Shown here: positions 26,682 to 32,600 of the stretch, in pieces
Numbering within the stretch: the first letter of the stretch is position 1
Layout: every line of letters begins with the position of its first letter
Origin: Neoechinorhynchus agilis
Lineage: Eukaryota; Animalia; Acanthocephala
Assembly: GCA_051530055.1 (NCBI GenBank)
Contig: CM121342.1
Location: 15,143,480 to 15,207,479, forward strand
DNA length: 64,000 nucleotides
Reading direction: 5' to 3'
Translations under genes and position numbers: made by a program
Notes under the pieces: generated by a model
The model's database searches: none
Told to the model about the DNA's origin: nothing
The model's input: only the letters and a program-made list of their open reading frames with translations

Positions 26682-29600
26682 ATGGCCAAAACGCAAAATT
26701 GCATTTCAAAATCCCTCTTAGTCACATTCATATTATGTCTTTTCATTGTTCAATCTGAACAAGCAAGAGTACTTAGAAAACCCGATGCTGTCAAACCAAG
26801 GGTACCCGGGCGTAAGTTGCCTCTCAAAATCATCTCTGATCCACTATTTCTGAAAAATCAATAGGCGATAAAATAAAACTGGCCGCAGCACGAAGACCTG
26901 ATGATATCGAATACGATGATTCGGTGAGTACTTCTTTTATTTAAATGTTAAACACCTGCATTTTGGTACCAATAAAGCAACTACCATCGGAGGGAAGTGC
27001 AGAAGCAGTTCGTATTTTTGTGTTATATTGACAATCAGACATAATCTCTTGCTTCAGGTGCCAATGTCTGCAGATAAAGCAGGTGTAAGACCTGTCGGAT
27101 TTGGGTTTGCTGCAGTTCCTGGTCAAACTGGTCCCCGTGGACCACAAGGATCGCCTGGAATCCAGGGATTACCAGGAATGCAGGGACCAAGAGGAGAACC
27201 AGGAGAACCAGGACAACCTGGACCTTCGGGCCCACCAGGTCAACAAGGACCAACTGGAGCAACAGGGCATACGGTAAGTGCAATGTAGATACTATCCAGC
27301 ATCACTATAATTATTATCGCGATAGGGAGAGCCAGGTCCAGTAGGACCTTCAGGACCACCAGGGCCAGCAGGACCTGTTGGACCGCGAGGACCAACTGGT
27401 CCGATCGGTTTACCAGGAGCAAAAGGACACGCTGTGAGTTTCGGGTAATCCGCACCCAAAAATAGACCGCCTGAACTAAGGGTTGGCCTGGGCAAGCTGG
27501 CGCTAAAGGAGAAGTTGGTAGTAAAGGTGAACCAGGACCGACTGGACCAATCGGAGTTCCAGGACAGCAGGGGCCAAGTGTAAGTTTATCAAAGATTTTG
27601 CGATAGAGGCTTACAGAGGTTAAATGACAGGGCCCGCAAGGACCTATGGGCGAACGCGGTAAAAGTGGCCAGCCTGGGCCTCCAGGCCCACGTGGAATTG
27701 ATGGTGCCGCGGGTGAACCAGGTCCAAGTGGAGTAGTTGGATCACCGGGAAATGTCGGGTTTCCCGGACAACAAGGAGCTAAAGGTTGGACGCCTGTATT
27801 GAACACAAGCGATGACATCCTTTTCGTATTTAGGAGAGCCAGGATCGTCCGGACCGAGAGGCTCTTCGGGTGTTCAAGGGCCACGCGGAGAGTCTGGACC
27901 ACCCGGACCTGTCGGAGCACCTGGATTAAGGGGGCCTACAGGACCAACAGGTCTTAGTGGACCTAAGGGTGCAGCCGTGAGTGTGTTAGTTGCTCGCTGC
28001 ATGGATAAATCGAAAATTACAGGGCGAACCCGGAGTACCAGGAACACCAGGTGCATCTGGACCACCTGGCGCACAAGGTCTACCTGGCGATACTGGACCA
28101 AGCGGAGCGAGAGGTGTTCCGGTAGGATTGGGATGTCGTTGTAGAAAACTATATACTCTTGCAACAGGGGCAACCTGGACAACAAGGAGAAAAGGGAGAT
28201 ACCGGGTCACCGGGACCACAAGGAGTTCGCGGTCAATCAGGACCAGTGGGAAGACCAGGAGCACCCGGCAAACAGGGTGCTGTTGGGCAACAAGGTTTAA
28301 GTGGACCTTCGGGACCTCCCGGCGATCGAGTAAGTAAAACTGTGATCATGGTATTATTATAACATACTTAGGGTGCGTCTGGATTACCTGGTGCGCCAGG
28401 AATCCCAGGATCATCCGGACAGAAAGGAGAACCGGGAAGGCAAGGCGAGGTTGGACCTCCAGGAGAGAGTGGGGCAACTGGTGAACCAGGGCAATCTGGC
28501 AGACCAGGGATGCCTGGTAGAGCTGGACAACAAGGAGCACGAGGTTCATATCAAGTCAATCCAGTACATACGCAAGTGTTAATCGAATATTTTTAGGTGA
28601 AACTGGACCATCTGGACCGCCTGGACCTGAAGGGAAACGTGGACCGCAAGGAGAACGGGGTTCTACAGGATCGCCTGGAATTCAAGGACCGGTTGGATTA
28701 ATGGGACCTGTCGGTCCATCAGGCGCAAGAGGCGAATCTGGAAAACCAGGAGTTGATGGTCTTCCTGGAGCTAAAGGCGCAACTGGTCCAAGGGGACCTA
28801 GAGGTTTCGTGGGACAACCAGGAGAAAGAGGAGAAACCGGAAAAGACGGAAACACGGGATCACCCGGACCCACGGGTAGAACGGGGCCAATGGTAAGATC
28901 GTCTGAAAAACAACACAAAAGCATGTTTTTTTCAGGGTCCTAGTGGACCACCTGGTGCAGCAGGACCTCCAGGAGTATCCGGGACACCAGGGAAGGACGG
29001 TCTTCCCGGGAGAGATGGTTCCCAGGGTCCTCGAGGAAGACCTGGGCAAATAGGAGAACATGGTGAAAAGGGTGATCGCGGAGAAGATGGAAAACAAGGC
29101 CTTCCAGGTAGAGAGGGACCGATCGGAGAAGCGGTAAGCTCGGGACTGCATTTGCAAGTCGATCTATTAGTCTTTAGGGACCCCGTGGCCCACAAGGTGA
29201 AAGAGGGCCTCGTGGATTCCCGGGAAATGCTGGAGCACCAGGTCTACGTGGATTGACAGGGCCAGTTGGTGCGCCGGGTGAAAAAGTTTGTTTTGAGTAT
29301 TGATTTGAATTTATATGTATGCTCAACATTTTACTAGGGATCGATTGGTCTCGCCGGACCGCAGGGTCCGCAAGGAAAAGAAGGCGTACAAGGTCGACAG
29401 GGCGCACCAGGTGATATTGGGCCGCCTGGAACGCCAGGAGCAAAAGGTAAGCTTGTTGGATATTTATTTCGCACTCCTTGTTAGTCAGGGTATTGTTGAT
29501 TTTTTGCACCTTAAGTTTAATCCCATTATCTTGCCGCATAACGTGAATCCTCGTTGAAACAGAAGATTTATACGCCCGGCCCAGCATTGGTTTACCGTCC

Positions 29601-32600
29601 GCCTTTTCTGAGTTTACAGCAATAACTAAATTCGAATATTTGGGCGTTGCAGCAGAGAATTGAGTAGTAGTTGATATAGTTGCGAATTCCCTTAAAGCTA
29701 GACTTATTTGACTGAGAAGACCCACTGATTCTGGAAGAGTACAAATGAGATTGCTGAAAGGGTTACTTATTGTATCTATAACCAGTAAGGTTCCTTCACG
29801 ATTTGGATGATTGCTAACTATCTCCATTACATTCTGAATAGCTCTAATGAACATGAAAATGTCCGGTCCGCACGACATGAAGATAATTCCCTTTTCCGTG
29901 GGTTGGTTTGGAATGCCGGTGTTGATCCATATAGTTCGTTTATTAAGTCTCAATGCGCTTAAGGCAAATTGAAGACAAAGAAATGACCGCCCGGTATTTG
30001 GTTGTCCGTATATCTCAACAACTTGTCCGCATGTTATACCGCTCCCCAATATAGCGTCCAGTCGCGAAATTTCAGACTTGAAGAAACTTCCACTTCTACT
30101 AGATGCTTCGAAAATAAACTCGATCGAAGTAGGCCCGTAGATCAACAAAATATCCATGAGTTCTTTTTTTAATGACATTACAGAAAACATTGTTACCTTG
30201 AGTTTATCGGATAACTCAGTTATATTTTGACTAAGGAACCAATGTACACTTCTGTAGCTTAAGTCTGTTTCAAATATTGCTGAGACTATTGGATTCTTGA
30301 GAAATCGAAGAACTTCTTGAATTTGAGTAGCTAACGTGATTGGTATGATAGGCATCTATGTCGTTTTTAGGAGCTCAGGGAAAACCAGGATCTCCTGGAG
30401 AACAAGGACCAACTGGAGAGCGTGGTGAACATGGTTCAAAAGGTGAACCCGGTCCTGCTGGAAGAATGGGTCCTATGGTAAGTTCCTTACCGATAATAGG
30501 TGTAGTGCATCGCCGAGACGAAATAGGGATCAATGGGGCCGAGGGGACCAGAGGGCAAGACTGGACCAGCAGGACCACAGGGGCCTGCTGGGGAGAAAGG
30601 AGATCAGGGAAGTGAAGGACCTGTTGGACCTCAAGGTGACTCTGGCAAACCAGGAAAGGATGGTGAACCTGGTAGCCCAGGAGAGGCTGGACGAGACGGT
30701 TCACCCGGAATGATGGGTGTACCTGGATTACCCGGAAAAGAGGGTCCAAGGGGTGAGAGAGGTGAAGCGGGGATAAGTGGACCAAAAGGAGATAAGGTAA
30801 ATGTTTAGGGCATTTAGAATAAAGTATGATGGTCGCTGTATATAGGGCCCAAGCGGTCAAACAGGGCCCGCAGGACCTAAAGGCGAAAGAGGAGAATCTG
30901 GTCCAAAGGGAGACAAGGGAACCGATGGATCACCAGGAGAACGAGGTCCAGCTGGGCCTCGTGGCGAAACAGGATCACCAGGACCACAAGGAGAAAGAGG
31001 AACGCCCGGTTTACCTGGACTCAGCGGTTCGCCTGGATCAGTTGGACCACAAGGTGAGTGCATCAATGATCTGAAATTGAAACTATTAGTGAAATGGTGA
31101 AAAATTTTAGGACCAGCCGGCAAGGATGGAGAACCTGGTCAAAAAGGTGAAGCAGGGAGACCTGGAAAAGAAGGAACTCGTGGATTACCGGGTCACACTG
31201 GACAGCAGGGACCGCCTGGACCAAGTGGTCAGGATGGACTGCCTGGACCAGCAGGACCGCGAGGTCCACCTGGTAAAGAAGGTGACACTGGACCTGCGGG
31301 ACCCCAAGGGCCACCAGGTCCGCAAGGTCCACCAGGACCTACAGGTCCGGTTGGATCTCCTGGTGAGGTAGGGCCTCAAGGACCACCGGTATGCTTCGAA
31401 TACAGAGCTTCAGTTTGTTTCTTAACTGTTAATAACAGGGTAAAGATGGAAGAGACGGTGTTCCAGGATCATCTGGTCTCCGAGGTGAAAAAGGAGATCG
31501 CGGAAGAGATGGATCTACTGGTAAACCAGGACGGTCGGGTGAAAAGGTGAGATTTGTTCTGCCTACTGCGAGGTTTCAATAGGCGCGTAGGGTGACAAAG
31601 GTGATAAGGGATGGACAGGAGCACCAGGAATCCCCGGAAAGCCTGGTTCCCAAGGTGAACAAGGAGAACCGGGGGAGCAGGGCCCTGCTGGAATGTCAGG
31701 ATCGCCAGGTCCAAGCGGTTCACGAGGTCGACCAGGAACTACAGGTCCAGCTGGACTTCAAGGTTCACCGGTATGCGCACATTTAGTTTCAGAGAAGTCG
31801 CATTAATTTTATGTAAAAGGGATCATCTGGAAGAGATGGTCCAATGGGTCCACTTGGGCCGGCAGGTCCACCGGGTCCACCTGGACTTCCAGGTCCTGCA
31901 TGTGAAGGTGGATCGTTTGACGCATCGATGTTAAGCAGTATATTTGCTGCACAAGGAGCAGTGAAGGGACCAGTGCAACAAGGATCGGCAGTCCCACAAG
32001 GTGGATTCCAGGAGCCGCCTGATTTCCGCGGATCTGGGCATGGTTCACGACCTCCAGAGTATCAGGACGACATGGCCGTCAAACGCTTCTATAAAGATGC
32101 TCTTGCATCGTTGAAAGTCACGCATGACGGAACGAAACAGCATCCAGGACTGACTTGCAAGCATTTGAAAGCTTCTAATCCCTCTTTGAAATCTGGCCAA
32201 TACTGGATTGATCCGAATCAAGGTTCAATCGAAGATGCGATAGAAGTAACATGCAAATTCGAGACTGGGGAAACCTGCATTGATGTCGCTGAAGAGACGA
32301 ATAATAAGTTTTACGGAGAAATAAGTGTAAACCATTCGGATTTAGTATGGTTAAATCAACAGTTGAGATTTGCAAATGTAAGATCTATGACCTTTATTTG
32401 AGCAAGAAACATTTTAGGTGTCTATAGTTCGCATATAAAGCACCAAAGAGGCAGATTGTCGCTCTTCAAAGATTATCACAGGAAGCATCGCAGGAAATAG
32501 TATTTTATTGCAAGAATAGTGTTCTTCACGATGAAGAACATAATGGTGTAAAACTTCTCACGTGGAATGATCGCCATCTTTCCCATGATGCTACCAATAC

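Follow-up and report, generated by a model that had tools for sequence, protein, structure and literature searches.

The stretch of DNA from the acanthocephalan Neoechinorhynchus agilis under study here, a window of 64,000 nucleotides (nt) at G000:C2:15143480-15207479, carries a plus-strand fibrillar collagen gene with triple-helix exons, one intron of which (29447-30370) is filled on the opposite strand by an open reading frame (ORF) encoding a protein of the RAD51 family. Judging from the sequence, we find the balance tipped slightly in favour of a real, single-copy, degenerate RAD51D-type paralog, squeezed antisense into a compacted collagen intron. A RAD51D-like gene nested in antisense and filling a collagen intron had been described in an earlier sequence-only reading of this DNA, and in this respect the analysis bears it out, RAD51D being probably the nearest paralog.

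The host intron measures 924 nt (GTAAGC...TTTTTAG, phase 1) and is the sole exception in a collagen gene whose remaining introns span 42-53 nt. It separates the exon 29338-29446, ending in ...GCA AAA G|GTAAGC, from the exon 30371-30477, which begins with GA GCT CAG..., and when the candidate collagen junctions were evaluated by script the Gly-X-Y periodicity was found to carry across them. On the minus strand, the ORF runs from 30355 to 29174 and comprises 393 codons; its ATG (30355-30353) lies 15 nt inside the collagen acceptor and directly abuts an in-frame TAG (30356-30358, in the context ...catAG|ATG), which fixes the start of the frame. The part contained within the intron (29447-30355) amounts to 303 codons homologous to RAD51-family proteins over their full length and of RAD51D-like character, comprising a helical N-terminal domain and a RecA core. 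Indeed, with a guanine-plus-cytosine (GC) content of 39%, this longest open stretch of the intron compares to a maximum of 157 codons in 2000 shuffles, and therefore the ORF is not a product of chance. As previously claimed, the collagen donor GTAAGC is read in antisense as Ala-Tyr (GCT TAC, 29452-29447), and it is here that homology to RAD51D stops. The frame stays open as far as 29174, again as had been stated, and ends there in a TAA (29176-29174) complementary to the TTA within the acceptor, TTTAG, of the collagen intron that comes next (29134-29177). Between the two lies a read-through tail of 90 codons plus the TAA (29174-29446), antisense to the exon 29338-29446, to a short intron (29286-29337) and to the exon 29178-29285; this short intron measures 52 nt, and not 58 nt as first given. 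At both ends, the outermost codons of the nested gene thus slightly overlap the splice signals of the collagen.

Membership of the encoded protein in the RAD51 family is secure. The Pfam matches are local, centred around the P-loop, and correspond to the KaiC-type ATPase family (PF06745, 2e-7, 31 bits, over its 26.6-bit cut-off) and to Rad51 (PF08423, 1.6e-3, 18.2 bits, under its 22-bit cut-off). Among the sequences of PDB structures, phmmer returned human RAD51D as the best single-domain match (31 bits, query residues 39-144 on 30-135), followed by RAD51B (22.6 bits), RAD51C (around 20) and RAD51 (at most 18). A full HMMER scan of 1.84 billion representative proteins yielded 104 weak matches, all of the RecA/RAD51/KaiC type and none below 1e-30, and those that span most of the length of the ORF are RAD51D orthologs, so named in Anolis, Amphimedon and Hirondellea. 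A profile was built from eight of the relatives that match over the full length, and this profile is clearly one of RAD51D, since it recovers human RAD51D at 3.7e-102 and the next paralog at 5e-39; aligned against it with hhalign, the ORF scores a probability of 99.1 (E 1.3e-18) over 234 columns.

The predicted structure is in agreement with this assignment. A look-alike search in the ESM Atlas was led by a cluster named 'RAD51 homolog 4-like' (score 0.97), and AlphaFold2, when run on a 22-sequence alignment, predicted the N-terminal helices and the RecA core with a mean predicted local distance difference test (pLDDT) of 71.9 and a predicted template modelling score (pTM) of 0.63; this model leans on an alignment composed mostly of RAD51D relatives, and the single-sequence prediction (pLDDT 37) was useless. 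Using the AlphaFold2 model, Foldseek retrieved at least 500 matches at E ≤ 0.001, which among the matches listed are throughout chains of the RAD51/RadA family, the highest being RAD51D chains from the BCDX2/DX2-CX3 complexes. When the ORF is aligned with RAD51D orthologs the starts coincide, and the last β-strand, CEINIQQ, ends together with the shorter orthologs, at the intron boundary. The Walker B strand is preserved as the hydrophobic TLLVIDT (residues 189-195; 29771-29791, minus strand), with Asp194 in an invariant column. Orthology to RAD51D is our best guess, and these several weak but concordant tests make it somewhat more probable than not.

Searches with the PF08423 and RAD51D profiles covered the 46.2-Mb, 102-contig N. 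agilis assembly, in which the nested ORF is single-copy and no further RAD51D-like gene is found. In fact, the searches yield just three RAD51-family genes, namely RAD51 (C1:3.716 Mb), a multi-exon paralog (C1:13.509 Mb) and the nested ORF, and for this assembly this answers the question of whether another RAD51D copy exists, which the sequence-only reading had set down as a check. RAD51 consists of a single 364-codon exon, identical to NCBI KAL7674479.1. The second paralog (L002:831-1839; G000:C1:13507685-13510786, minus strand) has an intact P-loop, GEAGAGKT, and its exons best match XRCC3 (the Walker A exon) and RAD51C (the C-terminal exon). These genome searches gave no match resembling DMC1 or XRCC2, and a weak fifth match (L009) was set aside as an Aquarius-like helicase. 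A word-index protein search with the ORF returned no protein, the ORF itself included, an exact look-up of the 393-residue product was negative, and the supplement of the N. agilis transcriptome paper has no RAD51 or XRCC entry. The ORF appears to be unannotated, since no similar protein is present in the searched collections, which do contain RAD51 of the same species. N. agilis has thus retained no fewer than three members of the RAD51 family, namely RAD51, a RAD51C/XRCC3-like gene and the nested RAD51D-like gene; the last of these brings an apparently unannotated gene of homologous recombination to a parasite genome that is strongly reduced.

A second case of the same kind is found 257 kb away, where an ORF for a DHHC palmitoyltransferase fills a 741-nt intron of a teneurin gene, on the same strand as its host. 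This ORF (L010:1305-2067; G000:C2:14884300-14889300) starts 10 nt after the host donor (TTTAG|GTATGTTACC ATG), its TGA lies around 20 nt beyond the presumed host acceptor, and an ATTAAA follows around 50 nt further, within host exon sequence. The presence of two intron-filling nested genes on one chromosome arm suggests a deletion-driven compaction of introns around nested genes.

For the compaction history, expression, function and partner of the nested RAD51D-like gene we infer the following. Compaction would have narrowed the intron of a presumably strongly expressed collagen down to the coding sequence nested in it, until only the splice signals of the collagen itself were left, and these now share nucleotides with the codons at either end of the nested gene. 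The stop codon and 3' untranslated region (UTR) of the gene would then no longer lie within the intron, so that the frame continues through stop-poor antisense collagen, the 90-codon extension being probably either an incidental appendage or untranslated, and not a selected second frame. The resulting protein, with arginine in place of the P-loop lysine, would most likely act as a non-hydrolysing structural partner of the RAD51C/XRCC3-like paralog in the assembly of RAD51 filaments; such a naturally occurring Lys-to-Arg change in the P-loop suggests that the paralog functions without hydrolysing ATP.

A number of observations weigh against a working RAD51D gene. The Walker A motif departs from GxxxxGK[T/S], reading GQPNTGRS (residues 117-124; 29984-30007, minus strand) with Arg123 encoded by CGG, as checked base by base, while the corresponding lysine is invariant in all eight RAD51D relatives and nearly so in the 22-sequence alignment. 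Around six of the 15 columns invariant among these eight relatives appear changed when read by eye, and around 20 residues after strand 2 are missing from the ORF. As read from the sequence, the Lys-to-Arg replacement, the altered invariant columns and the missing residues fit a relaxed constraint. Also, the Pfam domain RAD51D_N (PF21794) goes undetected in residues 1-95 at E ≤ 10, six of the eight relatives matching it; nevertheless, a helical N-terminal domain is predicted for the ORF and aligns with that of the relatives. The assignment to RAD51D in particular is challenged by a mixed RAD51/RAD51C/RadA profile, which scores as well as the RAD51D profile (hhalign probabilities of 99.1-99.2 over 234-237 columns), and by a tree which places the ORF on the RAD51D side weakly (66/75), its terminal branch being 3.0 changes per site long. 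Furthermore, the collections searched hold no ORF-like protein or close relative, though they include N. agilis RAD51, and the gene has neither a stop codon nor a downstream poly(A) signal in the normal position, which is odd for a working gene.

Several of these features would also be expected of a recently dead relic, that is, of a nested RAD51 paralog which was deprived of its stop and 3' end by the trimming of the intron, or had lost its function earlier, and which is now neither expressed nor useful, its frame merely not yet having been struck by a stop codon. The replaced P-loop lysine, the apparent loss of invariant columns, the missing stop and poly(A) signal and the absence of any similar protein from the collections, hence of an annotation, all fit such a relic, as does the lack of a TATA-like element (see below), and many conserved metazoan genes have been lost in acanthocephalans (PMC12256650). 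Against it stand the 303 open codons, nearly twice the maximum seen in shuffled sequence, the retention of the full domain architecture with a fold-compatible pattern (pLDDT 72), and the agreement of the in-frame start and of the domain end with those of the relatives. A frame that is intact despite around three substitutions per site has acquired most of its divergence under selection for an open frame, and because this large divergence must have built up under selection, any death of the gene would have to be very recent. Altogether we regard a relic as unlikely, although it deserves to be taken seriously.

On the 5' side of the nested gene, just 15 nt separate its ATG from the collagen exon. 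Several actin genes of this genome have CATATAAAAG TATA boxes around 45-55 nt upstream of the ATG, implying 5' UTRs of around 20 nt; this spacing, taken together with the 15-nt gap, would place any proximal promoter of the nested gene in the antisense of the collagen exon 30371-30477, which lies directly upstream of the nested ATG. The actin genes themselves number at least 15 full-length intronless loci (L014-L022 and others), several of which are identical copies. The earlier proposal that the promoter must lie in antisense collagen holds in so far as a core promoter at this ATG must overlap antisense collagen, and would fail if a 5'-UTR intron is used. No TATA-like element was found upstream of the nested ATG.

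A spliced 5' leader would be compatible with the sequence catAG|ATG at the nested gene and with a much stronger TTTTTAG|ATG at RAD51. At the latter gene (L001:1077-1158, G000:C1 near 3.716 Mb), the ATG abuts a tract that strongly resembles an acceptor, …tatttttag|ATG, and hints at a trans-splice site or an intron in the 5' UTR. Spliced-leader trans-splicing is known from bdelloid rotifers and chaetognaths (PMC1925144, PMC12460157), and in the literature we found no report of it in acanthocephalans. Among 25 loci from the actin and histone searches, many of which are duplicates or have doubtful starts, an AG directly precedes the chosen ATG in two, and one further locus has an acceptor-like TATAG two bases upstream of it. 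Pervasive trans-splicing as an explanation of the 15-nt upstream space is thus unlikely, because AG|ATG loci are few and several actin genes have TATA boxes upstream instead, though the nested gene may be an exception.

On the 3' side there is an AATAAA (29468-29463) inside the coding sequence, 19 nt ahead of the TAC codon shared with the collagen donor, and it is the only canonical one that the minus strand has from 29468 to 26941 (around 2.5 kb). No AATAAA or ATTAAA occurs within 170 nt past the formal stop at 29174, and the weaker hexamer variants before 27800 are two, AGTAAA at 29335 and TATAAA at 29315, both upstream of that stop. In other genes of this genome the poly(A) signal lies around 15-80 nt past the stop and the 3' UTRs measure around 15-100 nt. 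From the sequence, the 3' end may close a 3' UTR that extends far through antisense collagen and has an unusual signal, it may be formed at the intron boundary, or it may belong to a gene that is no longer expressed.

Formation at the boundary would imply a working gene in which the AATAAA directs cleavage around 15 nt further on, after the TA of the TAC codon (29449-29448), so that polyadenylation completes a UAA and yields a 302-residue protein with no 3' overlap with the collagen exons. The position of this lone signal is suggestive, as the chance of an AATAAA within 30 nt of the boundary is around 0.03 at the window density of 0.84 per kb per strand, a value calculated post hoc; RAD51D homologs end at the same point, and the lack of canonical signals after 29174 and the size of the 3' UTRs in other genes also speak for it. 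In Blastocystis, nuclear genes are documented whose stops arise through polyadenylation (PMC4159000). On the other hand, a T-initial codon near the cleavage site is expected by chance, the nested DHHC gene of this same genome has an ordinary TGA with a downstream ATTAAA, and RPL3, RAD51 and the paralog at C1:13.509 Mb all have ordinary stops followed by their signals. We know of no animal nuclear gene with a stop completed by the poly(A) tail, and this also counts against cleavage at the boundary. On this sequence evidence it seems to us improbable that an animal nuclear gene lacks a stop in the genome and has its UAA completed by polyadenylation at the collagen intron boundary; if true, it would be a rare animal example of a gene that owes its stop codon to the poly(A) tail, brought about by the extreme shrinkage of an intron onto the gene nested in it.

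As to the read-through tail, a very different significance had been given to it in the sequence-only reading, which placed these 90 codons under dual-coding constraint. The frame is formally open to 29174, and a messenger RNA reaching this point would have its tail translated. Yet the tail has no counterpart in any of the aligned RAD51D relatives, which end at the column of the intron end, it has no match in a Pfam search, and its composition is merely that of antisense collagen, with a GC content at first codon positions (GC1) of 0.67 and a richness in proline and glycine. Stops occur at 1.1-2.6% of antisense codons in collagen exons and at 5.7% in short introns, and from these rates the chance of a stop-free passage through exon, intron and exon is around 0.14; of random entry points into the antisense frames of the collagen, 9% stay open for at least 90 codons. 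Antisense ORFs of 150-226 residues are present elsewhere over both head-to-head collagens, and two of them, of 226 residues (27240-27920, minus strand) and 199 residues (21737-22336, plus strand), cross several collagen exons and introns. The length of the tail is consequently no evidence for dual-coding selection, because antisense Gly-X-Y sequence is poor in stops and comparable antisense ORFs exist elsewhere. A functional 393-residue product, whose 90 antisense-collagen codons are selected alongside the collagen exons, is in our judgement most improbable, and the claim of a dual-coding constraint stands unsupported; the continuation of the frame into collagen exons has the look of a side effect of dense genome packing, and not of a second coding layer.

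Concerning the origin of the nested RAD51D-like gene, no poly(A) remnant, target-site duplication, terminal repeat or flanking repeat was found at the locus, and the genome searches revealed no parent copy. The intronless state of the ORF is uninformative on retroposition, RAD51 of N. agilis likewise being encoded by one exon, and an origin by retroposition is neither supported nor excluded. A mobile-element origin was rejected, the ORF being single-copy and having no terminal repeats and no target-site duplication. No structured RNA was found in the region.

The collagen (27121-31900, plus strand) has introns that are mostly in phase 0, before a Gly codon; four of them, the host intron included, are in phase 1, interrupting a Gly codon (G|GN), and the exons divided by phase-1 introns have summed lengths that are multiples of 9. 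The phase of the host intron was considered as a mark of a newly created intron and rejected; as phase 1 is shared by three further short introns of this collagen, the host intron looks ordinary and old. A junction pair 8 nt away (29455/30378, GTTGGA..GCTCAG) keeps the Gly-X-Y repeat too, with much poorer splice signals; it would give Gly-Lys-Leu in place of Gly-Ala-Gln and is a possible minor alternative splice. The junction near 31058-31159 was not cleanly resolved by the script. In the short collagen introns no consistent YTRAY motif was found, and we make no claim of a branch-point overlap. Transcripts of N. agilis fibrillar collagens are strongly regulated, being male-biased and decreasing with body size (PMC12690905). 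Downstream, between the 3' end of the collagen and RPS4 (35839-36675, minus strand), reverse-transcriptase-like ORF fragments (33617-35587, plus strand) resemble a decayed non-LTR (long terminal repeat) retrotransposon.

Three known systems can be compared with the nested gene. The first is provided by the polyadenylation-created stops of Blastocystis nuclear genes (PMC4159000): in the nested gene too there is no genomic stop at the conserved C-terminus, a poly(A) signal lies within the last codons and an in-frame TA is spaced plausibly for cleavage. We take this as no more than a likeness, seen in DNA sequence, and it concerns a single gene and not a genome-wide habit, other N. agilis genes having normal stops.

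The second is RAD51D itself (RAD51 homolog 4, RAD51L3), a component of the BCDX2 and DX2-CX3 complexes (PDB 8FAZ, 8OUZ, 9Q2A). The ORF shares with it a length of around 300 residues, a helical N-terminus followed by a RecA-type core and the Walker B aspartate, and RAD51D is both its best PDB sequence match and its best Foldseek match. It differs in being only around 20% identical, in the arginine that replaces the Walker A lysine and in the residues missing after strand 2; the nested gene is moreover single-exon, has no stop at the conserved C-terminus and escapes detection by Pfam RAD51D_N.

The third comparison is with nested intronic genes of animals, among them the DHHC gene in teneurin. 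In both cases a whole gene lies inside one host intron, fills it to within 10-15 nt and has an end that enters host exon sequence. The RAD51D-like gene is distinct in being antisense, running 90 codons into two host exons and lacking, beyond the domain, its own stop and poly(A) signal, whereas the DHHC gene lies on the strand of its host. Taken together, the two genes illustrate the degree to which a host intron can be compacted around the gene that it contains, and intron-filling genes of this kind are a warning that gene finders miss them.

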